From assembly GCF_052425735.1 (NCBI RefSeq), contig NC_135771.1, positions 10,850,001 through 10,914,000 on the forward strand: DNA of 64,000 nt, in the 5' to 3' direction. Every line of letters begins with the position of its first letter. Positions within the stretch are counted from its first letter, which is position 1. Below are positions 780 through 34,201 of this stretch, one piece after another. The notes under the pieces were generated by a model. That model made no database searches, had not been told where the DNA came from, and saw only the letters and a program-made list of their open reading frames with translations. Origin of the DNA: Oculina patagonica (Eukaryota). A program made the position numbers and the translations under genes.

Positions 780-1058
780 TCCCATGATAGCAACTGGGGA
801 TGTAGTCAGGGTGATGAGATTGGAATCGTCCTAACAGACCATCAAAACAGCATATTGGCTCCACTTTCAGTCAACAGTGACGGATGGTACCTTCTGCCAG
901 GTTACACCTTCAACTCACCGGTCCTCGAGTTCTGTCAATCTCTCTCTTTCTCCGCTAGCGACGAGCTGCGTCTGTGGTATGGAGAGGATTTAATGGACAC
1001 TGGCGAGTACGACAACTATGGTACATCGTGCGCAGACCTGTATGATCTTACGGCTTAA
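780..1058 (+). pseudogene. 3' half of a divergent family member (type IV); 5' half absent from the window
   Basis: Reads in frame as SHDSNWGCSQGDEIGIVLTDHQNSILAPLSVNSDGWYLLPGY...LRLWYGEDLMDTGEYDNYGTSCADLYDLTA*. Sequence upstream of ~770 is unrelated and A-rich. Confidence 0.8.
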
Positions 1059-1872
1059 ATCAGCAGCCAACACTAAGCTGACCCGATGCAGCCGCAAACC
1101 TCGCACAGTACAATAAAATAGTAATTTTCAGTAGATGGGACAGTTTTGTAGTTACTTGATTGAAGGCATTAATAAAGGTACTCGAGGTGAAAAAGTTGTG
1201 TTTGTTCAGCGTCGTCTCCGAATACATTTTTTCCATTCACAAAAACTTAAGCTTGCTTCTCTATTTAAGCACTCGCATGCAGCAAAAACTCTGCAATCTG
1301 TCGTTTGGATGCGTTTCAAGGCGAACGTACAAAGTAAAGCCATTTTGAAAGAAATTGAACAGCACCTGATGCATAGAAGTACAATTCTTTGTAAATATTC
1401 CTAAAATATTGAAATTAAACTATCGATCAAATTTTGCCAGAGATGATGTAAAAATATGCAAGAATTTCTCTCAAGCGTTCGTGACAAAAATTACTCTAAC
1501 ATGCATTGATCATAGAGTTTCAATTTAAATTCCATTGGTTAGGTAAAAAAAAACATTTATTTTCCAGCTGAAAGAAAGAGGGAAAAGAATCAACAAAAAT
1601 TACTAAGAAATAAACAAAAAAAGAAAATAGAACTGTGAAAAAGTTGTAAAAATGTGTCCTAATTTTGGGCTGTGTATATGCTTGAGAATGATAGTTAACT
1701 CGCAACTGCCAGATAATCCGCATTTTTAGCAATTCAGTTTATCTTTAAATGTCTTTTGTCAGGAGTCATGGGCTCCTGCATTTTCCCAGTCAAAATTTGC
1801 TCAAATCCCAGTTCCCATTTACCCCCTTCAGGCCCCTCTTCCCTTTTCTAAACTTTTTATTTCAGTTGGACC

Positions 1873-2036
1873 CAGCCTAGTCCCTAGGCGTTCTCTCTTT
1901 TGTCCTGTAATCCGCGCGAAGTCTGGGACTGGGACGCTCAAGAGAACGCTGTTCTCGACGAGTCTTTCTCGGTGACGTCATGGCTCACAATAGGGTCCAG
2001 GGTTGACCGAGCCGAGAACGCCAAGGGACTAGGCTG
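1873..2036. mobile_element. MITE-like element with 23-bp terminal inverted repeats
   Basis: CAGCCTAGTCCCTAGGCGTTCTC ... GAGAACGCCAAGGGACTAGGCTG (1 mismatch). Paralogous copies at 21541-21704 and 35015-35178. Confidence 0.8.
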
Positions 2037-2489
2037 AGTTAATTAGACCCGGGTATCCAAACCTCTTTCACGGTTATGATTTTCCTTGTTTTAACTTGAT
2101 GAATTATTAATAAGTTTCAGAAGATTGTTTCTACAACTCCAAAGAAACACGGAGAAAATGTTCTCTAAATCTTTCAGAAAACACTGTGAGAATAAAAAGA
2201 AATCAATCGTTTATTTCGATTATCAAAATGTAAATTCTGTTTGTTCGCGCCATCATTACGTCAACATGTACACGTCGTGTTTGTCATGTCTTTCAGTCGA
2301 GTTTCAGAAGCACGGCTTTTAGTACAGAAAAACCCTTCAGTTCAGACGCATTTTTTCTACCAAGTGAATAGCCATCTCTGTTGTTTCCTATCAATCGATT
2401 TGAGGCGAAATAAAAAAAAAACTTATTCACAATAAATTAGGAGAAGGTTTTGCTTGCTGGGTATTGTTCAATTTAACGACAAACATAAC

Positions 2490-2792
2490 AAATAAATAAA
2501 ATAATAATAAATATGTGTTTATAGTGGTCATGCACTTAGCTTCATATCTCAACGAGATAGCTAGTTTACAGGCATGCCACTGAAACAGAGGAAACAAAGA
2601 ATTTATAAATGAACATAACAGGGTTAAAAATCCCAACTGGCAGGAGGCAGACCAGTTGGCTATATACAAAGCGTGGTCGAGGATTTGAAGTCAGGACAAC
2701 CGAGAAACAAATCCAGCTAGTGGCAGGCCTCGAACCGGTGACCTCCGGATTACAACACCAGCGCCCTAAACCACTCGGCCACGCTTGCCTCC
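2490..2792 (-). mobile_element. tRNA-derived SINE
   Basis: The minus strand has an A box (TGGCCGAGTGG), a B box (GGTTCGAGGCC) and a T-rich tail. It is absent at the paralogous empty sites ~22163 and ~35623 (..AAC|TATTCAAG). Confidence 0.85.
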
Positions 2793-3418
2793 TATTCAAG
2801 CAGACTGCCTGCTAAGGACTTCTTATGTAAACTTGCAAGATTGTGATGTCAATTGTGTGTGTAGAACATCACGTCATTCTAACTTAATAGCTTTTAAACA
2901 AGGTCCTTTTTATCGACTTCCGCTAGTTTTATCGTCCTAACTTACGAACTGTGTTTACATGTTAGAAGCCCCCTGTATGGGTATTTCTGAAAAAAGACGC
3001 GACGATTACCGCGAAAAAAGATCGAAGCGAGGATTTTTAAAGCTTCGAGCCTGTGGGATCGTATAAGAGTAAACTTGAAAAGCAAAAAAATGTCATAGGT
3101 AAAAGTTAAACACTGAACAAACAGAACAACGCTGGCCACAATAATTTTCCTTGTTATTGATTCCGAAACTGTTTGCTTGTTATGAATTTCAGTTATTTAT
3201 GTATTTTGTTGCTGAGGTGAGATATTTATTCGGCTGTGAATTACACTGACTACACTGTCACGCAGTTTCAATCATAAAACGAAGATCTGCTTAAAAAATA
3301 GAAGATTTGCAAAAACAAATGCGACGAAAACAAAGTTTACGTGTACCCATAGAGAGCCACATGTATTGTTAAACGTGAACGTCTTTGGGCGACAGATACT
3401 TAGAAGTGCCAACTTGTC

Positions 3419-3905
3419 GAAACTTGAAACTGGCTTTTAGCAGCTGTTTTTCAACTCATAGAAGTCGTTGAACAGTTAGCTAACTTTTGCTTTGACTGAA
3501 ATGTCGTCATCCGATCCACTTTACAGTCTGACTGTGAAAAGACCACGCGGGGGATCAATATTTGTCGAATCACAATAGCTGGCTAATAGAAAACCCGACC
3601 CGACGGTCACGTTTTGTACTCTTTAAACTCAAATGTCAACAAATCCATTGCGATCTTTTTTCAAAACTTGCACGGCATTAAGCAGCTGTTTTCCAACTCA
3701 CAGAAGACGTTGAACAGTTAGCTAACTTCTGCTTTGAAGGAAATGTCGATAGTAACCGTATCCACTTTACAGTCTGACTGTGAAAAGACGACGCAGCCTG
3801 AGGGATCAATATTTGTCTTGAATCACAATAGCTGGCTAATAAAATCCCACCCGATGAACACGTTCTGTACTCTTAAACTCAAATGCTAACAAAGGCATTC
3901 TGATC
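3419..3905 (+). repeat. Tandem ~245-bp sub-repeat upstream of the promoter
   Basis: Two copies, 3419-3662 and 3663-3905 (AAACTTG..GCAGCTGTTTT..CACAATAGCTGGCTAATA..CTCAAATG). Some other units carry only one copy. Confidence 0.9.
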
Positions 3906-4290
3906 TTTAACAAACACCTTCCTACGTAACAAATAACAAATCTGTTTCGTCATCCCTTTTCGCAGCCTCTGTCGTCTTCGTTTTTAAAATTGGCATAAAA
4001 TTGAGCGTTATTTTGGTATTCAGCATTAGCCCTATACGAGTTCTAAAACAGAAGACTCATTTTTAGTATTACACTCTCTCTGACTGTTTTTACTTTTGTT
4101 GAAGTTCACGGCACAACAAGTGAAAGTTTGCCCTATTTTAACTCGGCGAAAATTCACATTAATGTTAATGTTTAGAAGCCACGTCACCCAAGATGAATGC
4201 AACGGGATATGCTCCGTCTGCAGGTTCTTCTGACATTTTTCCAACTTGATAGATCTCAATTTGATATCTTAACGTTTCGAATTACAACCT

Positions 4291-4395
4291 TAGAAAAGCA
4301 CAGAAAGCCACTGATCACATTCAGTTCTTCACAGAGAGCTAACCAGTAACGAAGTCTTAGACTTGAAGATCAAGAGACAAGAAACCCACATTACG
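4291..4395 (+). promoter_or_regulatory. Putative core promoter and non-coding exon 1 of the first type I gene
   Basis: Initiator-like TCAGTT at 4321-4326 and a weak TATA-like TAGAAAA ~30 nt upstream. Donor CG|GTGAGT at 4396 is conserved upstream of all nine intact genes (other donors at 7650, 11602, 16576, 19575, 36984, 40390, 43555, 46805). Confidence 0.6.
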
Positions 4396-5036
4396 GTGAG
4401 TCATTCTTATAGCTAGTTTTAGCAAGTTTGCCTTTTTAACAGCAGAGTAATAAAGTTGCTCGTGTTTTTCGTGGATAATGAGAAGCGAATACATGAGCCG
4501 GGAAAATACTGAAAGCCGTCCGTTTTTTCTGGCAAAAATCCGTACTGATTTTCAATTTTTTTTTTGGCAATTTTATTCCTTCAAGACGGTCCATATTAGT
4601 AAACGGAATTGAAATCCTAATAGAAGATCGTAAATTACCCAGGCTTCATAAATCATAAATCATTACTGTAGTCAAGATGCGCAATTTCGTGTACTCCTTT
4701 GTGTGCAATCTCTGACTCCTCGTTTTGTGATACAATTCGTTTTGTGAACTCGTTTCATCTTGATGACACAGCCTGTGTATTTAACAACCGCTTGTTGGAC
4801 TAAGAAAAGGCTAGGACAGGCAACGGTCTAAAACTTTGACGCCTTCTGTAAGCTAGATACAAAATGCGAGAAAAAAGAAAGAAATATTCGTATAAACAAG
4901 CCCTTCTACTAATGTTCGACTATTCAATTGCTAAACATAAGCAGGACAAAGTTCGTCGCGATTTCTGAGGCGCAATAGCGAAGAGGAGCCCCATAACATC
5001 ATGTCTTATAATCTTCTCATTTTTCTTCTGTCTCAG
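4396..5036 (+). other. Putative 5'UTR intron
   Basis: GTGAGT donor; polypyrimidine tract plus CAG acceptor (TCTCATTTTTCTTCTGTCTCAG) ending 17 nt before the ATG. The acceptor is conserved in all full-length copies. Confidence 0.7.
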
Positions 5037-5053
5037 ATCAAAACGAAGTGATC

Positions 5054-5557
5054 ATGTTGTTCAAATTCCTTTTGATGTCCTTGATGGCCACCGTGCTGAT
5101 GTCCGACGAAGCTTCAGCAAATACCTGTCCTAATCAATGGGTGAAACTCAACGAGTATCCAGTTTGCTTCGGAACCCGAGATAGCCAGTTCGGTAAGTTT
5201 ACCGTCAAGACAAACATCGCCGTGAGCTCCCTGATGCTCGTGCACCGCTTAGGTGCGGTAAATTGTCAACATACCACTAAAGCCCGTGACAGCAACTGGG
5301 GATGTAATCGTACTAGCATTGGTGTCGTCCTAACAGACCATCAAAACAGCATACTGGCTCCACCTTCAATCGACAATGAAGGATGGTACCTTCTGCCAGG
5401 TTACACCTCCAACTCGCCAGTCCTCGAGTTCTGTCAATCGTTCTCTTTCTCCGCTAGCGACGAGCTGCGTCTGTGGTATGGAGAGGATTTACGTGGATCC
5501 ACCGAGAGCAACAACGCTGGTACATCGTGCGCAGACGTGTATGGTCTTGTGGCTTAA
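5054..5557 (+). CDS. Secreted Cys-rich protein, type I (167 aa, NQW variant)
   Basis: ATG at 5054 (the ORF track starts at an upstream GTG). Hydrophobic signal peptide MLFKFLLMSLMATVLMSDEASA, 6 Cys, NRT sequon, WYGEDL motif, downstream AATAAA. Confidence 0.93.
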   Translation: MLFKFLLMSLMATVLMSDEASANTCPNQWVKLNEYPVCFGTRDSQFGKFTVKTNIAVSSLMLVHRLGAVNCQHTTKARDSNWGCNRTSIGVVLTDHQNSILAPPSIDNEGWYLLPGYTSNSPVLEFCQSFSFSASDELRLWYGEDLRGSTESNNAGTSCADVYGLVA

Positions 5558-8213
5558 ACCAGCAGCCAACACTACGCTGACCCGATGCAGCGGCAAACCT
5601 CGAACAGTAAAATAAAACGGTGATTTTCAGTAGAGGGGACAGTTCTGTAGTTACTTGTTTGAAGGCATTAATAAAGGTACTCGAGGTGAAAAAAAGTTGT
5701 GTTAGTTCAGTGTCGTCTCCGAATACATTTTTCCCTTCACACAAACTTAAGCTTGCTTCTCTATTTAAGCACTCGCATGCAGCAAAACTCTGCAATCTGT
5801 CGTTTGGATGCGTTTGGAGGCGAACGTACAAAGTAAAGCCATTTTGAAAGCAATTCAACAGCACCTGATGCATAGAAGTACAATTCTTTCTAAATATTCC
5901 CAAAATATTGAAATTAAACTATCGATCAAACTTTGCCAGAGATGACGTCGAAATATGCAGGAATTTCTCTCAAGCGTTCGTGACAAAAATTACTCTAACA
6001 TGCATTGATCATAGAGTTTCAATTTAAATTCCATTGGTTAAGTATAAAAAAAACACATTTATTTTCCAGCTGAAAGAAAGAGGGTAAAGAATCAACAAAA
6101 ATTAAGAAATAAACAAAGAAAGAAAATGGAAGGTGTGTAAAAGTCGTAAAAATGTGTCCTAATTTTGGACTGTGTATATGCTTGAGAATGATAGTTAACT
6201 CGCAACTGCCAGATAGTCTGCATTTTTAGCAATTCAGTTTCTATATAAATGTCTTTTGTCAGGAGTCATGGCCTCCTGCATTTTCCCAGTCAAAATCTGC
6301 CCAAATCCCAGTTCCCGTTTACTCTTTCAGGCCCCTCTGCCCTATTCTAAACTTTTTACTTGAGGTACCCCTTAAAATTCTTGGTTTTCACGTGACGTAA
6401 TCAAAATTACAAAATCGCAAGAACCCTGAGTTTTTATCCTTCACTGGATATTAGACATTTTTTTTGATGATATATATTTTGTTGAACATTACACTGACTA
6501 CACTGTAAAGCAGTTTAAATCATAAAACGAAGATATGCTTAAAACAATAAAAGATTTGCAAAAAAAAGCGACGAAAACAAAGTTTACGTGTACCCATAGA
6601 GAGCCACATGTATTGTTAAGCGTGCACGTCTTTGGGCGACAGATACTTAGAAGTGCCAACTTCTCGAAACTTGAAACTGGCTTTAAGCAGCTGTTTTCCA
6701 ACTCATGGAAGCCGTTGAAAAGTTAGCTAATTTCTGCTTTGACTAAAATGTCGTCATCCGATCCACTTTACAGTCTGACTGTGAAAAGACCACGCGGGGG
6801 ATCAATATTTGTCTTGAATCACAATAGCTGGCTAATAGAAAACCCGACCCGACGGTCACGTTTTGTACTCTTTAAACTCAAATGTCACTGAACAAATCCA
6901 TTGTGATTTTTTTCTCAAAACTTGCACGGCATTAAGCAGCTGTTTTCCAACTCATAGAAGCCGTTGAACAGTTAGCTAACTTCTGCTTTGACTGAAATGT
7001 CGTCATCCGATCCACTTTACAGTCTGACTGTGAAAAGACGACGCAGCCTGAGGGATCAATATTTGTCTTGAATCACAATAGCTGGCTAATAAAACCCCAC
7101 CCGATGGACACGTTTTGTACTCTTTAAATTCAAATGCTAACAAAGGCATTTTGATCTTTAACAAATACCTTCCTACGTAACAAAAAACAAATCTGTTTCG
7201 TCATCCCTTTTCGTAGCCTCTGTCGTCTTTTGTTTTAAATTGGCATAAAGTTGAGCGTTATTTTGGTATTCAGCATTAGCCCTATACGAGTTCTAAAACG
7301 GAAGACTCATTTTTAGTATTACACTCTCTCTGACTGTTTTTACTTTTGTTGAAGTTCACGGCACAACGTACAAGTGGAAGTTTGCTCTGTTTTAGCTAGG
7401 CGAAAATTTACATTAACGTTAATGTTTAGAAGCCACGTCACCCAAGATGAATGCAACGTGGCATGCTCTGTCTGCAGGTTCTTCTGACATTTTTCCAACT
7501 TGATAGATGTCAATTTGATATCTTAGCGTTTCTAATTACAACCTTAGTAAAGCACAAAAAGCCACCGATCACATTCAGTTCTTCACAGAGAGCTAACCAG
7601 TAACGAAGTCTTAGACTTGAAGATCAAGAAACAAGAAACCCACATTACGGTGAGTCATTTTTGAAGCTACTTTGCATTTTTAACAGCAGAGTAATAAAGT
7701 AGCTCGCTTTTTCGTGAATAATGCGAAGCGAATACATGAGCCGGGAAAGTACTAAAATCCGTCCGTTTTTCTGGTAAAAATTTCTACTGAATTTCTATTT
7801 TTGTTTCGCAATTTTATTCCTTCAAGACGGTCCATATAAACGACATAGAAATCCTTATAGAGACTGTTATTGAAGATCGTAAATTCCTCAGGCTAGCTTT
7901 CAGGCTTCATAAATCATAAATCATTACTGTAGTCAAGATGCGCAATTTTGTGTACTCCTTTGCGTGCAGTCTCTTACTCCTCGTTTTTACAATTCGTTTT
8001 TTGTTTAACTTGTTTCATCTTGATATCACAGCCTGTGTATTTAACAACCGCTTGTTGGACTGAAAAAAGGAAAGGACAGGGAACGCCTTCTGTAAGCTAG
8101 ATACATAATGCGAGAAAAGATGAAATATTCGTATAAAAAAGGCCCTCTATTAATGTTCGAATATTCAATTGCCAAACATCAGCAGGACAAAGTTCGTCAC
8201 GATTTCTGGGCAC

Positions 8214-8323
8214 TATTCTGTCGAGGAACTATCGGCTGATAGTTGCCCCGCGGAAAACTGATGTTCTTAAAACAAATATTAGCCCGAGAAGCGAAGCTTC
8301 GAGGCCTATTATGCTAGTTTTAA

Positions 8324-8355
<32 letters not shown>

Positions 8356-8608
8356 CCGATAGTTCCAAGTCAGAAACACTCTATCGTTTTTATTGTTCAC
8401 CTGACTAAATTTTCTTCCGCGCGCCCATTCAAAAACGAGCATTTGAAATATTTTTTACTTTTCAGGATAAAAAACTCAATTGTAAACCGAAATTTAACAA
8501 TCGAAACAAAACCAGACAAGAAACCCACTAAATGCAGTGAATTTGGTTGGGTTTTTTGGTCTGCAGGCACGCTTTTTTACCAAACATTTCACGGGCGGGC
8601 ATATAACG

Positions 8609-8642
<34 letters not shown>

Positions 8643-8908
8643 TTTTATTAAAAACGCCCAAAGAATTGCAATATTTAAACTCTTCAGCTGTTTTCGTTGA
8701 CGCGTTTCGGTTACCATACTTGTGGTCAATGGTATATGAGTTCATATATTATTGCCTGTTAACCAATCAAAACGCAGGAATTGCAATATACCATTGCAAG
8801 TTTTTAATAAGGGCTGATAGCGCCCTTTGCAGATGAACATTATCGCGTCACGTGATCAATTAAAACCAATCAGAATCGGAAAAAATTTGGTGGTGTGCTA
8901 CAATACAT
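8214..8908. mobile_element. ~695-bp insertion in the intron of the type II gene (unclassified repeat)
   Basis: Interrupts ..GGCAC|AATAGCGGAGCTCCC, which is contiguous at ~33590. Absent from all other introns. Confidence 0.7.
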
Positions 8909-9009
8909 AATAGCGGAGCTCCCATTCAACGCGCGCGAGAGGAGCCCCATGACATCATGTCTTATAGTTCTGTAAATTTTCTTCCGTCTCAGATCAAAAC
9001 CAAGTGATC

Positions 9010-9525
9010 ATGTTGTTCAAGTTCCTTTTCATCTCCATGATGGCCACCGTGCTATTGTTCGAAGAAGCTTCGGCTGACTGGGTTTCTCAATGGGTGAAGC
9101 TTAACCAGGATCCAGTTTGCTTTGGAGCCAAAGATAACCGGTACGGTAGCTTTAGAGTCAGTACAAACATCGCCGTGAGCTCCTTGATGCTCGTGCACCG
9201 GTTAGGTGCTGCGATAAGGTGTGATGCTTCACCATCCCATGATAGCAGGTGGGGATGCGGTGATGACAGAATTAATGTCCACCTAACAGACCATAACAAC
9301 ATGCAACTGGTTCCAGCAACTTCAGTCCCGAAGGACGAGTACACATATTTTTACACTATGCAAGGTTACACCTCCAACTCACCGGTCCTCGTCTTCTGTC
9401 AATCTCTCTCTTTCTCCGCTAGCGACGAGCTGCGTCTGTGGTATGGAGAGGATTTAATTGACAATGGCGAGTACGACAACTATGGTACATCGTGCGCAGA
9501 CGTGTATGGTCTTAAAAAATACTAA
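9010..9525 (+). CDS. Secreted Cys-rich protein, divergent type II (171 aa)
   Basis: Intact ORF with signal peptide and the same framework motifs; 5 Cys, different loops, C-terminus KKY. Acceptor AG at 8991-8992. Confidence 0.93.
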   Translation: MLFKFLFISMMATVLLFEEASADWVSQWVKLNQDPVCFGAKDNRYGSFRVSTNIAVSSLMLVHRLGAAIRCDASPSHDSRWGCGDDRINVHLTDHNNMQLVPATSVPKDEYTYFYTMQGYTSNSPVLVFCQSLSFSASDELRLWYGEDLIDNGEYDNYGTSCADVYGLKKY

Positions 9526-12254
9526 GCTGATCCGATGCAGCCGCAAACCTCGAAAAGTAAAATAAAATGGTGATTTTCAGTAGAGGGGACAGTTTTGTAG
9601 TTACTTGATTGAAGGCATTAATAAAAGTACTCGAGGTGAAAAAAGTTGTGTTAGTTCAGTGTCGTCTCAGAGTACATTTTTCCCTTCACACAAACTTAAG
9701 CTTGCTTCTCTATTTAAGCACTCGCATGCAGCGAAAGCTCCGCAATCTGTCGTTTGGATGCGTTTGAAGGCGAACGTACAAAGTAAAGCCATTTTGAAAG
9801 CAATTGAACAGCTCCTGATGCATAGAAGTACAATTCTTTGGAAATATGCCTAAATATTGAAATTAAACTATCGATCAAATTTTGCCAGAGATGATGTAGA
9901 AATATGCAGGAATTTCTCTCAAGCGTTCGTGACGAACAATTACTCTAACACGCATTGATCATACAGTTTCAATTTAAATTCCATTGGTTAGGTATAAAAA
10001 AACACATTTATTTTCCAGCTGAAAGAAAGAGGGAAAAGAATCAACAAAAATTACTAAGAAATAAACAAAAAAAGAAAATAGAAGAAGTGAAAAAGTCGTA
10101 AAAATGTGTCCTAATTTTGGGCTGTGTATATGCTTGAGAATGACAGTTAACTCGCAACTGCCAGATAGTCCGCATTTTTAGCAATTCAGTTTCTATATAA
10201 ATGTCTTTTGTCAGGAGTCATGGCCTCCTGCATTTTCCCAGTCAAAATCTGCCCAAATCCCAGTTCCCGTTTACTCTTTCAGGCCCCTCTGCCCTATTCT
10301 AAACTTTTTACTTGAGGTACCCCTTAAAATTCTTGGATTTCACGTGACGTAATCAAAATTACAAAATCGCAAGAACTTTGAGTTTTTATCCTTCACTGGA
10401 TATTAGACATTTTTTTTGATGATATATATTTTGTTGAACATTACACTAACTACACTGTAACGCAGTTTCAATCATAAAACGAAGATATGCTTAAAAAAAT
10501 AAAAGATTTGCAAAAAAAACGCGACGAAAACAAAGTTTACGTGTACCCATAGAGAGCCACATGTATTGTTAAGCGTGCACGTCTTTGGGCGACAGATACT
10601 TAGAAGTGCCAACTTCTCGAAACTTGAAACTGGCTTTTAGCAGCTGTTTTCCAACTCATAGAAGCCGTTGAAAAGTTAGCTAATTTCTGCTTTGACTAAA
10701 ATGTCGTCATCCGATCCACTTTACAGTCTGACTGTGAAAAGACCACGCGGGGGATCAATATTTGTCTTGAATCACAATAGCTGGCTAATAGAAAACCCGA
10801 CCCGACGGTCACGTTTTGTACTCTTTAAACTCAAATGTCACTGAAAAAATCCATTGTGATTTTTTCTCAAAACTTGCACGGCATTAAGCAGCTGTTTTCC
10901 AACTCATAGAAGCCGTTGAACAGTTAGCTAACTTCTGCTTTGACGGAAATGTCGATCGTAACCGTATCCACTTTACAGTCTGACTGTGAAAAGACCACGC
11001 AGCCTGAGGGATCAATATTTGTCTTGAATCACAATAGCTGGCTAATAAAACCCCACCCGATGAACACGTTCTGTACTCTTAAACTCAAATGCTAACAAAG
11101 GCATTCTGATCTTTAACAAACACCTTCCTACGTAACAAAAAACAAATCTGTTCCGTCATCCCTTTTCGCAGCCTCTGTCGTCTTCTGTTTTAAAATTGGC
11201 ATAGAATTGAGCGTTATTTTGGTATTCAGCATTAGCCCTATACGAGTTCTAAAACGGAAGACTCATTGTTAGTATTACACTCTCTCTGACTGTTTTTACT
11301 TTTGTTGAAGTTCACGGCACAACAAGTGAAAGTTTGCCCTGTTTTAACTAGGCGAAAATTCACATTAACGTTAATGTTTAGAAGCCACGTCACCCAAGAT
11401 GAATGCAACGGGATATGCTCTGTCTGCAGGTTCTTCTGACATTTTTCCAACTTGATAGATGTCAATTTGATATCTTAGCGTTTCTAATTACAACCTTAGT
11501 AAAGCACAAAAAGCCACCGATCACATTCAGTTCTTCACAGAGAGCTAACCAGTAACGAAGTCTTAGACTTGAAGATCAAGAAACAAGAAACCCACATTAC
11601 GGTGAGTCATTTTTGAAGCTACTTTGCATTTTTAACAGCAGAGTAACAAAGTAGCTCGCTTTTTCGTGGATTATGCGAAGCGAATACACGAGCCGGGTAA
11701 GTAATGAAAGCCGTCCGTTTTTCTGGCAAAAATTCCTACTGATTTTCTATTTTTGTTTCGCAATTTAATTCCTTCAAGACGGTCCATATAAACGACATAG
11801 AAATCCTTATAGAGACTCTTATTGAAGATCGTAAATTCCACAGGCGTCAAACATCATAAATCATTACCGTAGTCAAGATGCGCAATTTCGTGTACTCCTT
11901 TGCGTGCGTCTCTTACTCCTCGTTCTGGGATACAATTCGTTTTTTTTAACTTGTTTCATCTTGATATCACAGCCTGTGTATTTAACAACCGCTTGTTGGA
12001 CTGAAAAAAGGAAAGGACAGGGAACGGTGTAAAACTTTGACGCCTTCTGTAAGCTAGATACATAATGCGAGAAAAAAGAAAGAAATATTCGTATAAACAA
12101 GCCCTTCTACTAATGTTCGACTATTCAATTGCTAAACATCAGAAGGACAAAGTTCGTCGCGATTTCTGAGGCGCAATAGCGAAGAGGAGCCCCATAACAT
12201 CATGTCTTATAATCTTCTCATTTTTCTTCTGTCTCAGATCAAAACGAAGTGATC

Positions 12255-12758
12255 ATGTTGTTCAAATTCCTTTTGATGTCCTTGATGGCCACCGTGCTGA
12301 TGTCCGACGAAGCTTCAGCAAATACCTGTCCTAAACACTGGGTGAAACTCAACGAGTATCCAGTTTGCTTCGGAACCCGAGATAGCCAGTTCGGTAAGTT
12401 TACCGTCAAGACAAACATCGCCGTGAGCTCCCTGATGCTCGTGCACCGCTTAGGTGCGGTAAATTGTCAACATACCACTAAAGCCCGTGACAGCAACTGG
12501 GGATGTAATCGTACTAGCATTGGTGCCGTCCTAACAGACCATCAAAACAGCATACTGGCTCCACCTTCAATCGACAATGAAGGATGGTACCTTCTGCCAG
12601 GTTACACCTCCAACTCGCCAGTCCTCGAGTTCTGTCAATCGTTCTCTTTCTCCGCTAGCGACGAGCTGCGTCTGTGGTATGGAGAGGATTTACGTGGATC
12701 CACCGAGAGCAACAACGCTGGTACATCGTGCGCAGACGTGTATGGTCTTGTGGCTTAA
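12255..12758 (+). CDS. Secreted Cys-rich protein, type I
   Basis: Near-identical to 5054-5557. Confidence 0.93.
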   Translation: MLFKFLLMSLMATVLMSDEASANTCPKHWVKLNEYPVCFGTRDSQFGKFTVKTNIAVSSLMLVHRLGAVNCQHTTKARDSNWGCNRTSIGAVLTDHQNSILAPPSIDNEGWYLLPGYTSNSPVLEFCQSFSFSASDELRLWYGEDLRGSTESNNAGTSCADVYGLVA

Positions 12759-12939
12759 ACCAGCAGCCAACACTACGCCGACCCGATGCAGCGGCAAACC
12801 TCGAACAGTAAAATAAAATGGTGATTTTCAGTAGAGGGGACAGTTTTGTAGTTACTTGTTTGAAGGCATTAATAAAGGAACTCGAGGTGAAAAAAGTTGT
12901 GTTAGTTCAGTGTCGTGTCCGAATGCATTTTTTTTTACC

Positions 12940-13089
12940 AGCCTCCCCCTCAGGCGCCTCGATTTTCGCTGCAACAAAGCGAGAACAAAGCGAACGCGAA
13001 GCGCGAGTTACTGGTGACGAGACCTTCCCCTACTCCCTTGCGCGCCCATGTCCCACAAAACAAGAGAGACGCGTCTGGGTACGAGGCAG
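12940..13089. mobile_element. 150-bp MITE-like insertion in the 3' flank
   Basis: AGCCTC...TACGAGGCAG; absent from most units. The same insert occurs at 38318-38467 and 41729-41878. Confidence 0.8.
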
Positions 13090-14223
13090 TTTTTTCCCTT
13101 CACAAAAAACTTAAGCTTGCTTCTCTATTTAAGCACTCGCATGCAGCGAAAGCTCCGCAATCTGTCGTTTGGATGCGTTTGAAGGCGAACGTACAAAGTA
13201 AAGCCATTTTGAAAGCAATTGAACAGCACCTGATGCATAGAAGTACAATTCTTTCTAAATATTCCTAAAATATTGAAATTAAACTATCGATCAAACTTTG
13301 CCAGAGATGACGTCGAAATATGCAGGAATTTCTCTCAAGCGTTCGTGACAAAAATTACTCTAACATGCATTGATCATAGAGTTTCAATTTAAATTCCATG
13401 GTTAGGTATAAAAAAAACACATTTATTTTCCAGCTGAAAGAAAGAGGGAAAAGAATCAACAAAAATTACTAAGAAATAAACAAAAAAAAAATAGAAGAAG
13501 TGAAAAAGTCGTAAAAATGTGTCCTAATTTTGGGCTGTGTATATGCTTGAGAATGACAGTTAACTCGCAACTGCCAGATAGTCTGCATTTTTAGCAATTC
13601 AGTTTATATGTAAATGTCTTTTGTCAGGAGTCATGGCCTCCTGCATTTTCCCAGTCAAAATCTGCCCAAATCCCAGTTCCCGTTTACTCTTTCAGGCCCC
13701 TCTGCCCTATTCTAAACTTTTTACTTGAGGTACCCCTTAAAATTCTTGGTTTTCACGTGACGTAATCAAAATTACAAAATCGCAAGAACCCTGAGTTTTT
13801 ATCCTTCACTGGATATTAGACATTTCTTTTGATGATATATATTTTGTTGAACATTACACTGACTACACTGTAAAGCAGTTTCAATCATAAAACGAAGATA
13901 TGCTTAAAAAAATAAAAGATTTGCAAAAAAACAGCGACGAAAACAAAGTTTACGTGTACCCATAGAGAGACACATGTATTGTTAAGCGTGCACGTCTTTG
14001 GGCGACAGATACTTAGAAGAGCCAACTTCTCGAAACTTGAAACTGGCTTTAAGCAGCTGTTTTCCAACTCAAAGAAGCCGTTGAACAGTTAGCTAACTTC
14101 TGCTTTGACTGAAATGTCGTCATCCGATCCCCTTTACAGTCTGACTGTGAAAAGACCACGCAGCCTGAGGGATCAATATTTGTCTTGAATCACAATAGCT
14201 GGCTAATAAAACCCCACCCGACC

Positions 14224-14487
14224 AACTGGGGATGTAATCGTACTAGCATTGGTGCCGTCCTAACAGACCATCAAAACAGCATACTGGCTCCACCTTCAAT
14301 CGACAATGAAGGATGGTACCTTCTGCCAGGTTACACCTCCAACTCGCCAGTCCTCGAGTTCTGTCAATCGTTCTCTTTCTCCGCTAGCGACGAGCTGCGT
14401 CTGTGGTATGGAGAGGATTTACGTGGATCCACCGAGAGCAACAACGCTGGCACATCGTGCGCAGACGTGTATGGTCTTGTGGCTTAA
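14224..14487 (+). pseudogene. 5'-deleted type I copy
   Basis: The upstream sub-repeat (AAAACCCCACCCGA) is fused to CAACTGGGGATGT (NWGC). About 1.4 kb is missing, covering the promoter, exon 1, intron and signal peptide. Confidence 0.9.
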
Positions 14488-17228: not shown

Positions 17229-17732
17229 ATGTTGTTCAAATTCCTTTTGATGTCCTTGATGGCCACCGTGCTGATGTCCGACGAAGCTTCAGCAAATACC
17301 TGTCCTAAACACTGGGTGAAACTCAACGAGTATCCAGTTTGCTTCGGAACCCGAGATAGCCAGTTCGGTAAGTTTACCGTCAAGACAAACATCGCCGTGA
17401 GCTCCCTGATGCTCGTGCACCGCTTAGGTGCGGTAAATTGTCAACATACCACTAAAGCCCGTGACAGCAACTGGGGATGTAATCGTACTAGCATTGGTGC
17501 CGTCCTAACAGACCATCAAAACAGCATACTGGCTCCACCTTCAATCGACAATGAAGGATGGTACCTTCTGCCAGGTTACACCTCCAACTCGCCAGTCCTC
17601 GAGTTCTGTCAATCGTTCTCTTTCTCCGCTAGCGACGAGCTGCGTCTGTGGTATGGAGAGGATTTACGTGGATCCACCGAGAGCAACAACGCTGGTACAT
17701 CGTGCGCAGACGTGTATGGTCTTGTGGCTTAA
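17229..17732 (+). CDS. Secreted Cys-rich protein, type I
   Basis: Intact; same protein as 12255-12758. Confidence 0.93.
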   Translation: MLFKFLLMSLMATVLMSDEASANTCPKHWVKLNEYPVCFGTRDSQFGKFTVKTNIAVSSLMLVHRLGAVNCQHTTKARDSNWGCNRTSIGAVLTDHQNSILAPPSIDNEGWYLLPGYTSNSPVLEFCQSFSFSASDELRLWYGEDLRGSTESNNAGTSCADVYGLVA

Positions 17733-20228: not shown

Positions 20229-20732
20229 ATGTTGTTCAAATTCCTTTTGATCTCCATGATGGCCACCGTGCTGATGTCCGACGAAGCTTCAGCAAATACC
20301 TGTCCTAAACACTGGGTGAAACTCAACGAGTATCCAGTTTGCTTCGGAACCCGAGATAGCCAGTTCGGTAAGTTTACCGTCAAGACAAACATCGCCGTGA
20401 GCTCCCTGATGCTCGTGCACCGCTTAGGTGCGGTAAATTGTCAACATACCACTAAAGCCCGTGACAGCAACTGGGGATGTAATCGTACTAGCATTGGTGT
20501 CGTCCTAACAGACCATCAAAACAGCATACTGGCTCCACCTTCAATCGACAATGAAGGATGGTACCTTCTGCCAGGTTACACCTCCAACTCGCCAGTCCTC
20601 GAGCTCTGTCAATCGTTCACTTTCTCCGCTAGCGACGAGCTGCGTCTGTGGTATGGAGAGGATTTACGTGGATCCACCGAGAGCAACAACGCTGGTACAT
20701 CGTGCGCAGACGTGTATGGTCTTGTGGCTTAA
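20229..20732 (+). CDS. Secreted Cys-rich protein, type I (ISMM signal peptide, ELCQSFT)
   Basis: Intact ORF with conserved acceptor. Confidence 0.93.
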   Translation: MLFKFLLISMMATVLMSDEASANTCPKHWVKLNEYPVCFGTRDSQFGKFTVKTNIAVSSLMLVHRLGAVNCQHTTKARDSNWGCNRTSIGVVLTDHQNSILAPPSIDNEGWYLLPGYTSNSPVLELCQSFTFSASDELRLWYGEDLRGSTESNNAGTSCADVYGLVA

Positions 20733-25264: not shown

Positions 25265-25267
25265 TAT

Positions 25268-25322: not shown

Positions 25323-25323
<1 letters not shown>

Positions 25324-27035: not shown

Positions 27036-27205
27036 GGGGGAGCAGGGATAGCGCAGTGGTGAGAACGCTCACTTCCCACCAATGTGGCCCGGGTTCGATT
27101 CCCGGACATGGTGTTATATGTGGGTTGAGTTTGTTGTTGGTTCTCGTCCTTGCTCCGAAGGTTTTTCTCCTGGATCTCCGGTTTTCCTCCCTCCACAAAA
27201 ACCAA
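27036..27205 (+). mobile_element. 3'-truncated SINE copy
   Basis: Matches 24201 onward, then breaks into unrelated sequence at 27206-28126. Confidence 0.8.
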
Positions 27206-28695: not shown

Positions 28696-30433
28696 TATTT
28701 ATTTATTTAATAAAACCACTTGGGATGTTGGGAAAACACTCTTAAAACATGCAAATCACTCGCATAACGGCTAGTCATTTATAAGCTTTTCTTCTCTTCT
28801 CCTAGTCCAGTCCCTGAATTCTCTTCCATCTTCCCGCGTGGTTTAATTACGCCAGTAAACCCTTAGAAAGTGCAGTCTATTGCTTAAAGTAATAATATTT
28901 AGGCTTTTTAATATAGAAACTCTCTGCTTGGCATGTGAGTTTTCTAGGCATTTCTTTTCTAGCGCTAGTAAGCTCTGTTCAGTGATAGAAAAACGCCACA
29001 AGGCATGCGCTGTTTCTTGGCAACGATCTGGCGCTAGCAAGTTCTGCTCAGTAATTTTCTATTTTCTCATTAAAATATTTCATTCCGTCACGTTTTTTAT
29101 TCTTTGTAACTTAAGACTTATCTAAAGCATCGATCTATCAATCAAAATATGCTTGTTTTTGTTCATACCCCAAGGTAACCTACCTACACACCAAAAATGA
29201 ATGGGTGTTTCAATAATTTATTTCCAAGTTTGATTCACTTTCTCAAAGAAGTGTTCTTGAATATCTCATTTGACGACTGTCAGCTGTCAGTAATTTCGTG
29301 CTCATTCCGCGTTGCTCCTAATTTTCAATTTTTAATATCCTCTTTCCTTACTAAAATATTTCGTACCTTCACGTTTTTTTCTTCTTTGTAACTTAAGACT
29401 TACAGTAAAGCATCGTGAACAAAAATTTATCTGAATATAACTTAGATACGGAGCGCGTGCTGACTGGTCAAAAACCTAATATGTAACTACGCTCGACTTC
29501 GCGTAAGGACGAAGAATTGCTTAGCATTAGTTTAATGTTTTATTTTGCCCTATCAGTTGATGAAAACAGAAGATATGGTTCTCATAAACGATCGAAATGC
29601 AAACTAAATAAGGTCACTACAACGAATTTTCCCGCCCGCCGTAGTTAATTAAAATAGAGCAAAGGACCTCGAGGGGAAAAAACGAAAACAAACACAAGAA
29701 ACAGTTTTCGCTTTCACTGGCCTGGCATGATATTGATAGCGTTGATATGTTCTCATTCAACATTCTACTACTCGAACACCTTATTTGTAAGGAGAAAAAC
29801 TACTACAAACAGGACGCGATAAAAGCTTAATAGAAACTTTATAGACTCTATATAAACGCCGAGTCCTCGCACGCACTTGAATTCTGTACATGTTAAGTCT
29901 GTTATTCGGCAAATAACCCACGAAGAAATACAGGCATTATGTTTATAAATTCGGAATAAATTTCGAAAGCAGAATTTCTAGAATAAACCTCTATTCCAAA
30001 TTTCGCCAGTCTTTGAAATTTGTAAACTTGCAAACTTTCCGTGCAGTCCATATTTACTCTCGTGATGTATGACTCCGGCCGATTTCGTGAACGTACTTTT
30101 AAATCATTGAACAAATTTTCTGCTTTTAATCGATTGCCATTTTCCTTTGCTTTCATTTGCTTTCAAATTTTCAATTTTGTATATTCTGTTTTCTCACTAA
30201 AAGACCTTTATAGCTTATTACCTTTTAAAACTTTTCGTCGTGTTGATCAGTAAAATACTAAGCGTGGAGCTCAGAACCTGTGTCTTATTCTTTCAGCCAC
30301 TTTTATTGGCTGACCGAGTCATTCGATGAGTGTGTTGAGAATAAGCAAGTAGTTGATCTTGAAATTTAAACAAGATTTCTTTATAAAAACCAATAGACTG
30401 CACTGTCCACTCAGTGGAGTTTTATTGGCGTAA

Positions 30434-30699
30434 GGGGGAGCAGGGATAGCGCAGTGGTGAGAACGCTCGCTTCCCACCAATGTGACCCGGGTTCGATTCC
30501 CGGACATGGTGTTATATGTGGGTTGAGTTTGTTGTTGGTTCTCGTCCTTGCTCCGAGGGTTTTTCTCCTGGATGTCCGGTTTTCCTCCCTCCACAAAAAC
30601 CAACACTTCTAAATTCCAATTCGATCGGGAATCCGAGGGCCACAGGTTTGTCAGTTGCAAAACTGTTACGAGCAACCCTCGTTAAACAAAGTCGATTTA
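30434..30699 (+). mobile_element. tRNA-derived SINE (unit 3)
   Basis: Paralog of 24201-24466. Confidence 0.85.
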
Positions 30700-31700
30700 C
30701 AGTTGACTCCCGATAACTCGAACCTTCAAGGGAAATTGAAAATGGTTCGAGTTATCGGGAATTGAAAATAAATTACCAGAAATAAGGGGGAAAAGGGTGT
30801 TTACTGATTTAAATGGATTTTCTATTCATAGAACAGTGTAGATCAGTGTGCATTTTAAATAAACAAATTTAATTGGTAAATAGATAAGCCGAAAGAGAAA
30901 GGAACAACATATTTCCAAATCACTGTCAGGTATACATCAGAACGTAACGTAAAACAGCAAATTTAATAGCTGCGAACTTTGCAGGTTTCAAAGAGAACAA
31001 CGCTAATGCTATAGGCTACTGATTCATAGATTATGCGACTGACTTTTCGAGAAATAGTCAGTTAATTCGCGCTGGCGATAACCCTTTAAAGTTTTCTAAG
31101 GTCGGATTTGGAAGAATCGATATCAACCTCCACACCCGGGCCTCCACAAACGAACTGAACGTCTATAGCACGTCAAAAGCGGGGCACAGTTCGTGTTTTG
31201 AGGGGCGTTCTAACTAGTGTAAGTTTTTATTTCAAATAATTTCAACGTTTTGGACTACAGCACGCTGTTTGTTTTGACTTGTCATGTATTGACCGACATG
31301 GTTGGAGTTATTGAGGGTAAAATTATATAGAAAATGACCTGAAGGGAAACGAAAGTTGGTTCGAGTTAGCGGGAGATTCGAGTTACAGAGGTAAAATTAC
31401 AGTACATGTAGAACGGAAATCCAGGAAAATAGATTTTGGTTCGAGTTAGCCTGCGAACAGGCTCCCGAGTGGGGTTTTTACGCGAGCGAAGCGAGCGGAA
31501 GAGCGGGGTTTTACGCGAGCGAAGCGAGCGGAAGAGCGGGGCCTGAGCGGCGCCCCCGTACTTCCCCTCAGGCCCCGCTCTTCCGCTCACTTCGCTCGCG
31601 TACGCCGCTCGCTTCGCTCGTGTAAAAACCCCACTCGGGAGCCTGTTCGCAGGCTAGGTTCGAGTTAGCGCGAGGTTCGAGTTAGCGAAGGACTCGACTG
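30700..31700. mobile_element. TA-TSD DNA transposon (unit 3) with nested MITE
   Basis: TA|CAGTTGACTCC ... GACTCGACTG|TA. Confidence 0.8.
31447..31656. mobile_element. GC-rich fold-back MITE with 9-bp TSD (Mutator-like)
   Basis: ~50-bp TIR starting TAGCCTGCGAACAGGCTCCCGAGTGGGGTTTTTAC; TSD GGTTCGAGT at 31438-31446 and 31657-31665; empty sites in units 1 and 2. Confidence 0.9.
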
Positions 31701-33691
31701 TATTTATTTATTTAATAAAACCATTTGGCATGTTGGGAAAACACTCTTAAAGCATGCAAATCACTCGCATAACGGCTAGTCATTTATAAGCTTTTCTTCT
31801 CTTCTCCTAGTCCAGTCCCTGAATTCTCTTCCATCTTCCCGCGTGGTTTAATTACGCCAGTAAACTCTTAGAAAGAGCAGTCTATTGCTTAAAGTAATAA
31901 TGTTTAGGCTTTTTAATGTAGAAAACTCTCCGCTTGGCATGTGAGTTTTCTAGGCATTTCTGCTCAGTGATAGAAAAACGCCACAAGGCATGCGCTGTTT
32001 CTTGGCAACGATCTGGCGCAAGCAACTTCTGCTCAGTGATCGCACGTACCTTAATAACTCATTTGACGACTGTCAACTGTCAGTAATTTTCTTTTTTCTC
32101 ATTAAAATATTTCATTCCGTCACGTTTTTTATTCTTTGTAACTTAAGACTGATCTAAAGCATCGTGAACTATAATTTATCTGACAAGAAATAGTTTTTAG
32201 GCTTTTTAAATGTAGAAAAATCTACCTTCCCTGGAAAAACGCCGCTTAAAATATGGTGTTTCTAGGCAACAATCTGGCGCCAGAAAGCTCTGCTCAATGA
32301 TTGAGTTTACCTAAATGGCTCATTTGTCAACTGTTAACTGTCAGCTGTCATTTTTGTTTTTCTAACTGGCTTATTAGGACCCCTTAAAAGAGAGAACGTC
32401 TAAGATCGTATCCCATTCTCAACAGAGAACCAACTATTAACGGATATCTGACTTGTCGCAGAAGAGGTTCATAAGTGAAGAAAAAGTGCAGTGCAGTAAG
32501 TAACGTCTTTTATCATGTTTATAAGATTCTCTCCTCCGCAGAGGCCTCTCTTTTTTTCGTACGGGCTGGGAAAAGGGGCAATGGGGAGAGGTGAAAATAA
32601 GCGCACGGGGCCTGGGGATATAACGGCTGCCTGATGTAGTACCTCTCGAAGTATAAACCAATGCCAAACACGAGGAAGTGGACGCATTCTTCACAACAAA
32701 TTTTTACAAAAGTATAAAATACCAAAAATACCGAGTCGATAATAGCTTTTGTATCACAATACCTGAAATGTTTGTTGAAAGCCTTAGTTCTTTGTATTCT
32801 TTTTAGAAAGTGGATAATGCTTTGATAAGGGAGAAACAGGGAAGTTACCTACCCTTTGGCCGTTTTTCTATGATTTTCTAAGTATGAATGTTTACTCGTT
32901 TTTCACACGTACGTGGATAAAAACAGAAAGTTTTATCACAGGTATCGGAAAAAAAAAATGCGTTGGCTCAAGTGTCGATAGTTAAGGGTTACAATTGTTA
33001 CTGTTGATAGTTAATTAATGTGTTTAAAAAGAGAAAGTGAAGTTTCTGACGGTGCTTTTGCCGCAGATCATCCATCGTTAAGGTCTAAAGCAAGAGCATT
33101 GATAAAATATTTGTTCAATAAATAACAAGTTTTAATCCCGCTTTTTGATCCCAATTTCTTTTAAACTGGTACCAGTTCTCGAAGGATTTCTTGTTTTCGT
33201 GGGGAAGGTTGCGGATTGACACATTTTGCATAGGAAACTCAAGGTGTTACGTTGCTATGAATTGCAACCTCCCCATGAAAAAACTCAGTAAATATTCATA
33301 CATGTACCACCAATTTTTTTTTTATTTTGATTTTTGAGTCCAGCTGATGGGTTGTAATTTCAATTTTCAAATTTACACTTACCGCTTTTTAAAACATTAT
33401 ATAACGAAACATGCTACAAATGGTTTTACAATGTTATCAAAATACTTAAACTATAAGCTATAAAAATACAAAACGAATAATGCGAGAACAAGAAAGAAAT
33501 ATTCTTATATACAAGGCCTTCTACTAATGTTCGACTATTCAATTGTCAAACATCAGCAGGACAAAGTTCCTCGTCACGATTTCTGAGGCACAATAGCGGA
33601 GCTCCCGTTCGGCGCGGCGAGAGGAGCCCCATAACATCATGTCTTATAGTCTTCTCATTTTTCTTCTGTCTCAGATCAAAACGAAGTGATT

Positions 33692-34201
33692 ATGTTGTTC
33701 AAGTTCCTTCTCATTTCCTTGATGGCCACCGTGCTGTTGTTCGACGAAGCTTCAGCAAATACCTGTCCTAAACACTGGGTGAAGCTCAACGATGATCCAG
33801 TTTGCTTTGAAGCCAAAGGTAACCAATACGGTTCCTTTACCATCAGTAGCAGGATCACCGTGAGCTCCTTGATGCTGGTGCACCGCTCTGGGTGGGTAAG
33901 ATGTTCTTTTGTTTTATCCGCTCAAAGCAACTGAGGATGCGGTGATGGCAGAATTAGTGTCCACCTAACAGACCATAAAAACGGGCGACTGGTTCCAGCA
34001 GCTTCAGTCCCGATAGACAGTTACGGGTATTACCATATGCCAGGTTACACCTCCAACTCGCCAGTCCTCGAGTTCTGTGAATCTCTCTCTTTCTCCGCTA
34101 GCGACGAGCTGCGTCTGTGGTATGGAGAGGATTTAACTAACAAAACCGAGTTCGACAACGCTGGTACATCGTGCACAGACGTGTATGGTCTTGTGGCTTA
34201 A
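33692..34201 (+). pseudogene. Divergent type III copy with a single in-frame TGA
   Basis: TGG>TGA at 33932-33934 (W of SNWGC). The frame continues intact as GCGDGRISVHLTDH...WYGEDLTNKTEFDNAGTSCTDVYGLVA*. Upstream homology stops at ~33477, so exon 1 is missing. Confidence 0.88.

Follow-up and report, generated by a model that had tools for sequence, protein, structure and literature searches.

The tandem array and its 47-nt block

The window, by which we mean the whole 64,000-nt stretch of Oculina patagonica DNA that was analysed, contains a complete tandem array of 12 gene copies. Each unit of ∼3.2 kb consists of a 5′ UTR exon, an intron and a single coding exon, which encodes a protein of ∼167 amino acids predicted to be secreted. 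An earlier note on this DNA had distinguished four types of gene, and these are real, distinct gene classes; all features described here lie on the forward strand. Type II comprises eight full copies and one truncated copy. The first of these, copy a (5054–5557), is an ORF of 167 aa plus stop; the other full ORFs lie at 12255–12758, 17229–17732, 20229–20732, 37635–38138, 41045–41548, 44208–44711 and 47461–47964, and the truncated copy (14223–14487), whose 5′ end is missing, starts at codon ∼81. Type I (780–1058), recognised by translation and alignment, is a mosaic, 5′-truncated fragment which retains codons ∼78–167 and the stop, with neither start codon nor signal peptide. The type III gene (9010–9525), delineated by its ORF, by trees and by RNA-like runs, encodes 171 aa, and the type IV gene (33692–34201) carries an in-frame TGA (33932–33934) in place of the conserved Trp82 codon.

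The type III intron (7649–8991, 1343 nt, GT..AG) is defined by a joint, 7648 to 8992, that appears in contigs from runs X1 and X3. The intron of type II copy a (4397–5036) is positionally homologous to it; the acceptor lies at 5036/5037, the genomic match of an RNA-like contig begins at 5036 after 21 unplaced letters, and the presumptive donor follows a 5′ UTR exon whose end is near 4396. The RNA-like runs, which are presumed to be RNA, also gave exon-only cover of type II copy a and covered the type III gene. From the exon-only cover and the GT..AG joint in these presumed-RNA runs, the array genes are probably transcribed.

The 47-nt identity of types I–IV that the earlier note had pointed out is exact (0 mismatches) at all four positions cited, 946, 5445, 9410 and 34089, and the same 47-mer recurs exactly at eight more (12646, 14375, 17620, 20620, 38026, 41436, 44599 and 47852). 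Thus there are 12 copies in the window, every one on the forward strand, where shuffled sequences lead one to expect 0; a whole-genome scan tolerating up to three mismatches gave 12 matches in total and none outside the window. The invariant run common to types I–IV is in fact 50 nt. In type I the block occupies 946–992 and encodes (L/F)-S-FSASDELRLWYGEDL, of which FSASDELRLWYGEDL is the most conserved motif of the protein family, the conservation analysis of the family profile placing ELRLWYGEDL at the top. Immediately after the block the sequences diverge strongly, again as had been noted, the next nine codons reading RGSTESNNA (II), MDTGEYDNY (I), IDNGEYDNY (III) and TNKTEFDNA (IV). This variable loop, codons 147–155, lies at 993–1019 in type I, and by alignment at 5492–5518 (II), 9457–9483 (III) and 34136–34162 (IV).

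Relationship to the lectin AJLec

[quoted passage not shown] When a profile built from 91 sequences was run against the PDB with hmmsearch, the sole match was AJLec (6a56_A, E 4.8e-37, chain residues 2–162). An AlphaFold2 model of type II copy a (pLDDT 84.4, pTM 0.76) likewise had 6a56_A as its top Foldseek match (E 8.8e-12, TM 0.74–0.76, rmsd 2.4, 34% identity), the next matches having TM values of 0.44 or less. The array proteins are thus modelled with the small jelly-roll beta-sandwich fold of AJLec, and, on profile and model together, the genes are predicted to encode AJLec-type Ca2+-dependent lectins. In round figures, array proteins and AJLec have in common ∼34% identity, a profile E of 5e-37 and the jelly-roll fold (TM 0.75, model), together with their size (∼145 aa mature, with an N-terminal signal ahead), the cysteine pairs of two intrachain disulfides, the sugar-site Ca2+ ligands (E144, D/N153, N154) and an aromatic residue, AJLec F103, retained as W/F/Y111.

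The block itself contributes E144 and D145, which align with the AJLec Ca2+ ligands Glu141 and Asp142 (residue roles according to PMC6070535), and the codons directly after it correspond to the AJLec Ca2+/sugar loop, residues 144–151, which includes N145, M147, E148, D150 and N151 (PMC6070535). In the profile alignment AJLec E141, D142, E148 and N151 are retained as E144, D145, E151 and N154, while AJLec D150 appears as D153 in types I, III, IV and V and as N153 in type II, where the substitution of Asn for Asp looks to be a conservative change. Family-wide, the sugar-site Ca2+ ligands are conserved at 96% (E), 89% (D) and 99% (N). The AJLec pairs Cys15–Cys156 and Cys48–Cys61 correspond to C38–C159 and C71–C84, which are present in every type and are invariant or 98% conserved in the family alignment, and which would form intrachain disulfide bonds. 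Cys25 and Cys127, equivalent to the interchain Cys3 and Cys122 through which AJLec forms its disulfide-linked dimer, occur in types II and IV. The counterpart of AJLec Cys3 is missing from types III and V and from the C7 paralog, which have DWVSQW in place of NTCPxW.

Further differences from AJLec bear on ligand recognition. The loops that carry its Gal-contacting Arg64, Phe67 and Tyr97 are shorter or replaced in the array proteins, and type II is without two second-site Ca2+ ligands (S44 and G148); because of these differences the sugar specificity of the array proteins is probably not that of AJLec. Secretion, sugar binding, divergent specificities and a part in recognition or immunity may all be proposed for them.

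The gene has also been amplified relative to AJLec, with 12 copies in the array and at least 149 matches across the Oculina patagonica genome, and no Pfam domain was found in the family. Predicted AJLec homologues have been reported previously, 29 in Stylophora pistillata and seven in Nematostella (PMC6070535, PMC10377782), and the published pattern, in which Ca2+ ligands are conserved and sugar-contact residues are not, extends to the array. In the papers found, those reports come without genomic organisation, selection analysis or expression evidence, to which the present work adds the array structure, loop omega above 1, mosaic recombination and probable transcription. It also names, and interprets structurally, a large unannotated coral gene family.

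Silent identity of the block and exchange between copies

Neutral divergence among the types, as measured at flanks and 4-fold sites, is only 0.04–0.15. The 3′ flanks have p-distances of 0.02–0.07 within groups and 0.11–0.13 between groups, and at unchanged codons over the whole coding sequence 8/53, 4/57 and 6/50 4-fold sites were changed between types. Against this background the identity of the 47-nt block is real yet ordinary, and a special mechanism is needless. Its invariant run far exceeds what the divergence of the coding region itself predicts, and is just slightly above what the noncoding 3′ flank attains, where invariant runs extend to 44 nt among four types and to 43 nt among 12 copies. 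With the peptide held constant, the probability of no silent change in the block is 0.23–0.26 at the flank rate and 0.04–0.07 at the coding silent rate, both values concerning a region that was picked after the fact. The silent sites are therefore identical largely by chance, the array being young and the block having only ∼10 such sites. The earlier note had held that uniform silent divergence, with a run expected by chance, would speak against its reading, and approximately this is seen. In mechanistic terms, the block would form a strand and the start of a helix bearing the Ca2+-coordinating Glu-Asp pair, a peptide so constrained, the most so in the family, that amino-acid change would not be tolerated, with the ∼10 silent sites left unchanged largely by chance. 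Because the probability is only 0.04–0.07 at the coding silent rate, mild homogenisation of the block may still be compatible with the data.

Exchange between copies, on the other hand, demonstrably occurred: the paralogs are mosaic, with loops and flanks swapped and breaks in other conserved stretches. Type I resembles type II as far as 898 and type III from 917 onward (max-chi2 p = 0.0008), so that II-like loops are joined to a III-like C-terminal loop, and its 3′ flank clusters with types IV and V; its break intervals are 898–917, which is 29–48 nt upstream of the block, and 1050–1076. The last type II copy has a type II coding sequence followed by a 3′ UTR that is type IV/I-like, with the break at 47938–47982 (triplet max-chi2 = 89, p = 0.0002). 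In type III the coding sequence has as its sister a paralog located just beyond the window, and the 3′ flank turns type II-like at about 9542–9553 (triplet break test, p = 0.006). Type IV alternates on a fine scale between II-like and III-like stretches, with a break at 33791–33794 (triplet break test, p = 0.03). Trees from coding and flanking sequence are in conflict (AU p = 1.8e-5 and 9.5e-6).

Given that exchange among the paralogs is certain, one could suppose that short-tract gene conversion keeps the block identical and that the block anchors the exchange of loop cassettes. All 12 array copies are identical, as conversion would have it, where the nearest paralog outside the array (type V, 4 kb past the window end) differs at 4/47 nt; the type III block is II-like with V-like sequence on both sides; and the value of 0.04–0.07 is on the low side. 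However, none of the five mapped break intervals overlaps 946–992 or its equivalents, and in types I and IV the informative sites before and after the block agree. The four changes in type V match its mean divergence from type III, and the C7 paralog altered the same codons in different ways, so that the shared state is most simply ancestral. Nor is framework 4-fold divergence between types II and III reduced (6/31), and invariant runs of 43–44 nt arise in noncoding DNA as well. We regard this explanation as unlikely. The suggestion that homogenised frameworks serve as crossover anchors is thus unnecessary for the block, with no mapped break inside it and probabilities of 0.04–0.26, and is partly right in its premise that the copies exchange sequence. 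Unequal crossing-over or gene conversion between units would also shuffle loops and flanks, with breaks falling in various conserved stretches and not specifically at the block.

Selection on the sugar-contact loops

The loops that contact sugar in AJLec evolve much faster than neutral DNA, with a loop dN of 0.7–0.8. Over the nine codons after the block, NG86 dN is 0.76–1.08 for type II against I, III and IV and 0.09–0.57 among I, III and IV. The same pattern is seen in three more loops of the AJLec sugar groove (residues ∼72–79, 85–92 and 104–115), and family-wide entropy peaks coincide with the same loops. By GY94 maximum likelihood, omega exceeds 1 in the loops (2.55; 2ΔlnL = 9.6, p = 0.002) and is 1.16 outside them (p = 0.52), in a test on five sequences whose recombination violates the single-tree assumption; dN/K4 in the loops is 4.8–9.2 (II versus III, V, C7 and IV). 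The post-block codons would thus be those of the Ca2+/sugar-binding loop, in which the ligand positions E151, D/N153 and N154 are kept and the residues between them replaced under positive selection, the likely outcome being paralogs with differing glycan specificities. The alternative offered in the earlier note, young paralogs with rapid loop change under selection, agrees well with the low neutral divergence, the loop dN and the omega of 2.55.

It might instead be argued that the variable segments are old lineages or balanced cassettes, around which concerted evolution has homogenised flanks, signal peptide and frameworks. NG86/YN00 dS in the variable region (0.26–0.36) is above the flank divergence (0.04–0.13), which at face value would imply a greater age for the variable parts than for the flanks; moreover, the type II variable part has 73% nucleotide identity both to its array neighbours and to chromosome-12 genes, and for more than 1 kb the noncoding DNA of the type III unit matches that of a type II unit at 99–100% identity. 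However, 4-fold sites at unchanged codons of the variable region, counts being small at 1–3 of ∼22, changed at only 2/22, 3/25 and 1/21, a divergence of 0.04–0.12 between types compared with 0.24–0.29 between type II and the chromosome-12 genes. Because these clean sites are not elevated, the raised dS is attributed to multi-hit codons. The excess differences are nonsynonymous: variable-region dN between type II and III, IV, V or C7 (0.42–0.47) is greater than that between type II and the chromosome-12 genes (0.31), even though 4-fold divergence for the former comparisons (0.07–0.17) is below the 0.24–0.29 of the latter. For the type II variable part the rest of the assembly offers no donor above 73% identity, and old cassettes seem to us quite improbable.

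We give very little credence to the block as a nucleotide-level element (RNA structure, regulatory site or splicing signal), or to a locally raised mutation rate in the loops, since, for all that 12 copies have 0 silent changes and the 3′ part of the block is near-identical even in chromosome-12 genes, the silent positions of R139, Y142, E144 and L146 vary like those of other conserved codons (heterozygosity 0.16–0.61 in 48 distant paralogs spread over 12 chromosome-scale pieces and three small contigs), and the unelevated 4-fold sites of the variable region argue against targeted hypermutation. The best account, which we hold to be probable, is of a young AJLec-type array in which selection acts on the loops and exchange is unrelated to the block.

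In snake PLA2 isozymes and conotoxins, whose evolution is accelerated, UTRs, introns and signal are conserved and the mature region is hypervariable. The array resembles such venom and defence families in that noncoding flanks and signal peptide differ far less than the mature coding region does, and in having dN above dS on the functional surface. It differs in encoding a predicted lectin and not a toxin, and in that part of its flank similarity stems from recent unit-level recombination. Hayes, Eytan and Hellberg (2010, ref. 73 in PMC10236652) reportedly described diversity of tachylectin-2 in Oculina corals among alleles and copies, and not in a mapped tandem array; that lectin is unrelated to the array lectins in fold and family. 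Like the coral tandemly duplicated gene arrays of Noel et al. 2023 (PMC10236652), where lectin orthogroups were picked via InterPro lectin-domain hits, the Oculina array is a species-specific, clustered amplification of a candidate recognition family. In contrast to that study, which judged gene conversion to be very rare, it gives a clear instance of sequence exchange within a coral tandem array (AU p ∼ 1e-5).

It is conceivable, and we put it forward tentatively, that the array constitutes a germline combinatorial repertoire, in which four independently evolving sugar-binding loops set between conserved frameworks are reshuffled into new sets by unequal crossing-over or conversion between units. 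The type I fragment would be an example, with loops 1–3 of type II and loop 4 of type III. If true, few mutations would suffice to supply the coral with many glycan specificities, within a lectin family of ∼150 loci unrecognised by Pfam. The fast-changing positions are those lining the Ca2+/sugar site of AJLec, the only solved relative. Since Oculina patagonica serves as a model in the study of bacterial bleaching and of facultative symbiosis, its diversified set of predicted secreted glycan binders is a candidate for microbe or symbiont recognition.

Copies and probable transcription of the array

The earlier note had reported a 47-nt block identical in types I-IV, and this was confirmed by exact matches at 12 places on the + strand (starting at 946, 5445, 9410, 12646, 14375, 17620, 20620, 34089, 38026, 41436, 44599 and 47852), with none expected in shuffled sequence. 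The same 12 sites, and no more, were found when the 529-Mb genome was scanned allowing up to three mismatches, and the array therefore lies wholly within the window. The fully invariant run in the alignment of the four types is 50 nt. Type II is present as eight full copies of 167 codons each (the first at 5054-5557) and one 5'-truncated copy; type III (9010-9525) is a complete gene, with 171 codons; type IV (33692-34201) is full length, with a TGA at 33932-33934 replacing the conserved Trp82 codon; and type I (780-1058) is a 5'-truncated fragment beginning near codon 78. The two truncated copies, type I at 780 and type II at 14223, begin about three codons apart, at codons 78 and 81, each with different, unrelated sequence upstream. 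In the public gene model P0001 the first 42 codons of type IV are spliced to the type II gene that follows it 3.8 kb downstream, so that the TGA is skipped; this is probably an annotation artefact, and possibly a read-through chimera.

In each gene an intron separates a 5' UTR exon from the one coding exon. Contigs from three RNA-like runs cover type II at 5036-5622 only and type III at 8992-9387 and 9543-9611 only, in each case exons, and contain a GT..AG joint from 7648 to 8992. The assignment of these runs to RNA is a guess by the tool, supported by the exon-only cover and the joint.

The units also carry several other features. Three type II copies, among them those at 37635 and 41045, carry in their 3' UTR a 167-nt insert with a poly-T head (12928-13094 in the third), bordered by GAAT(G/A)CA-like direct repeats. 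The insert looks like a SINE-type retroposon, and marks a sub-lineage of units duplicated after the insertion. An intergenic stretch of ∼250 nt is tandemly duplicated in each array unit, at about 88% identity (6661-6911 and 6912-7159). Within the spacer that separates type I from the first type II unit, ARAGORN found a tRNA-Thr(TGT)-like sequence (2714-2789, − strand), possibly a tRNA gene or else the head of a tRNA-derived SINE. Summed contig depth in the DNA-like run X11 reaches ∼370,000 at 8111-8874, inside the type III intron, and ∼30,000 at 6201-6582, neighbouring sequence having a few hundred. Both segments, for which the RNA-like runs likewise give some cover, look like high-copy repeats and are possibly transcribed.

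Relation to AJLec and the position of the block

A Pfam scan gave no match for types II and III, and there is no Pfam model for the AJLec-type family. A profile built from 91 relatives matched only one solved structure, that of AJLec (6a56_A, E = 4.8e-37), a Ca2+-dependent galactose-specific lectin of Anthopleura japonica, a sea anemone. An AlphaFold2 model (pLDDT 84) superposed on 6a56_A with a TM score of 0.74-0.76 at 34% identity, the next matches having TM ≤ 0.44. A fold search of the Swiss-Prot part of the AlphaFold DB returned only weak, generic beta-sandwich matches. At least 149 tblastn matches to the family are spread over many clusters in this genome (C6, C10, C11, C12, C13 and other pieces). 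Coral homologues of AJLec have been noted as predicted proteins only (PMC6070535; PMC10377782). The array adds a new and well-characterised member to a known lectin family.

In AJLec, the Ca2+ at the sugar site is bound by Glu141, Asp150, Asn151 and the main-chain oxygens of Met147 and Cys48, the second Ca2+ by Asn21, Asp142, Asn145 and Glu148, and galactose is contacted by Arg64, Phe67, Tyr97, Phe103 and Met147 (PMC6070535). The profile alignment places the WYG-E144-D145-L of the block on WYG-E141-D142-L of AJLec, from which the block would encode a strand and the start of a helix, with one ligand for each Ca2+ site. Residues 147-154, which follow the block, align with AJLec 144-151, so that what the earlier note described as a hypervariable loop would, on this alignment, be the Ca2+/sugar loop. 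Within it E151, D/N153 and N154 are kept and the positions between them are replaced. The best-conserved stretch family-wide is ELRLWYGEDL, and the entropy maxima (residues 72-79, 86-90, 107-109 and 147-149) coincide with the segments that carry the sugar-contact residues of AJLec. A difference from AJLec is the loss, in types III and V and the C7 paralog, of the equivalent of Cys3, which forms the interchain disulfide (DWVSQW replaces NTCPxW); judged from sequence, these proteins may lack the covalent dimer.

Neutral divergence, the block and exchange between copies

Over 900 nt of 3' flank, divergence inside the group {II, III} and inside {I, IV, V} is 0.02-0.07; between the two groups it is 0.11-0.13, and to the C7 paralog, which lies on chromosome-scale piece C7, it is 0.15. 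At codons whose amino acid is unchanged, 4-fold sites differ at 8/53 (II-III), 4/57 (II-IV), 6/50 (II-V) and 3/62 (III-V), and in the variable region alone at 2/22, 3/25 and 1/21. Together these indicate a neutral depth of ∼0.04-0.15 everywhere. The NG86/YN00 dS of the variable part is higher (0.26-0.36), largely as a result of multi-hit codons, from which about half of the 'synonymous' differences arise; we therefore dropped it and took as the neutral yardstick flank divergence together with 4-fold sites in codons whose amino acid is unchanged.

The block contains 9.7 synonymous sites. For a fixed peptide, the probability that no silent change separates the types is 0.23-0.26 if the flank rate applies and 0.04-0.07 if the coding silent rate does, values that apply to a region picked after the fact as the longest run. 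The identity is thus beyond chance when compared with the rest of the coding region, but not when compared with neutral DNA, where the noncoding flanks contain invariant runs of 44 nt over the four types and 43 nt over all 12 copies.

Exchange between copies is real, without being centred on the block. The patterns of informative sites change along the gene: type I is II-like to 898 and III-like from 917 (p = 0.0008), with a marginal III-to-IV switch near 1050-1076 in a triplet comparison (p = 0.05) and a 3' flank that clusters with those of types IV and V; in the last type II copy a break at 47938-47982 (p = 0.0002) leads into a IV-like 3' UTR; type III passes from V-like to II-like at 9542-9553; and type IV shows fine-scale mosaicism (p = 0.03). 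Across more than 1 kb, noncoding DNA in the type III unit matches a type II unit at 99-100% identity. The coding tree (codons 24-131), II | (IV, (C7, (III, V))), with support of 100/99, conflicts with the flank tree, which separates (I, IV, V) from the II copies and III (support 99-100), and the AU test rejects the swapped groupings (p = 1.8e-5 and 9.5e-6). Whilst gene conversion has been judged very rare in coral tandem arrays (PMC10236652), this array, as regards the exchange of units and segments, is a case to the contrary.

The proposal that the block is homogenised by gene conversion, as an anchor for crossovers, was not supported, since all the mapped breaks lie outside it and, in types I and IV, the sites on either side of it agree. 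Type V, the nearest outside paralog (4 kb past the window end), differs from the block at 4 nt, consistent with its mean divergence from type III. In the C7 paralog the same codons are changed in a different way, and the state common to types I-IV is therefore most simply ancestral. A nucleotide-level element or constraint is ruled out by a comparison of 48 paralogs drawn from 12 chromosome-scale pieces and three small contigs: silent positions in the conserved codons of the block show variation like that seen at other conserved codons.

Selection on the loops

It is the loops, rather than the block, that are unusual. Comparison of type II with III, IV, V and C7 gives an NG86 dN of 0.42-0.47 for the variable region and 0.68-0.80 for the loops; against the more distant chromosome-12 genes it is 0.31 and 0.39-0.44, respectively. 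The closer set thus has the higher dN, yet a 4-fold divergence two to three times lower. Fitting the GY94 model by maximum likelihood in IQ-TREE to five sequences (II, III, IV, V and C7) assigned the 50 loop codons an omega of 2.55 (2dlnL = 9.6, p = 0.002), and the remainder of the mature protein one of 1.16, without significance. Given this and the shallow neutral depth, the other possibility raised in the earlier note, of young paralogs whose loops changed rapidly under selection, is supported. The evolutionary pattern is a familiar one: positive selection has been reported for a different lectin, Oculina tachylectin-2, as cited in PMC10236652.

Import or micro-conversion from extant distant donors is unsupported by a genome-wide donor search, in which no locus elsewhere exceeded 73% identity to the type II variable part, and the sole matches to that of type III were type V next to it (88%) and the C7 paralog (84%). 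Targeted hypermutation of the loops is disfavoured, as the variable region shows no raised divergence at its 4-fold sites.

Variation within type II was also compared. Among the full coding sequences compared (5054-5557 and seven others) all seven variable sites are nonsynonymous and none is silent, the changes being M8I, L10M, N27K, Q28H, V91A, F126L and S131T. In the adjoining flanks 3.6-5.4% of sites are variable, these counts being usable to ∼1 kb downstream, beyond which the edge units are misaligned in the unit alignment.
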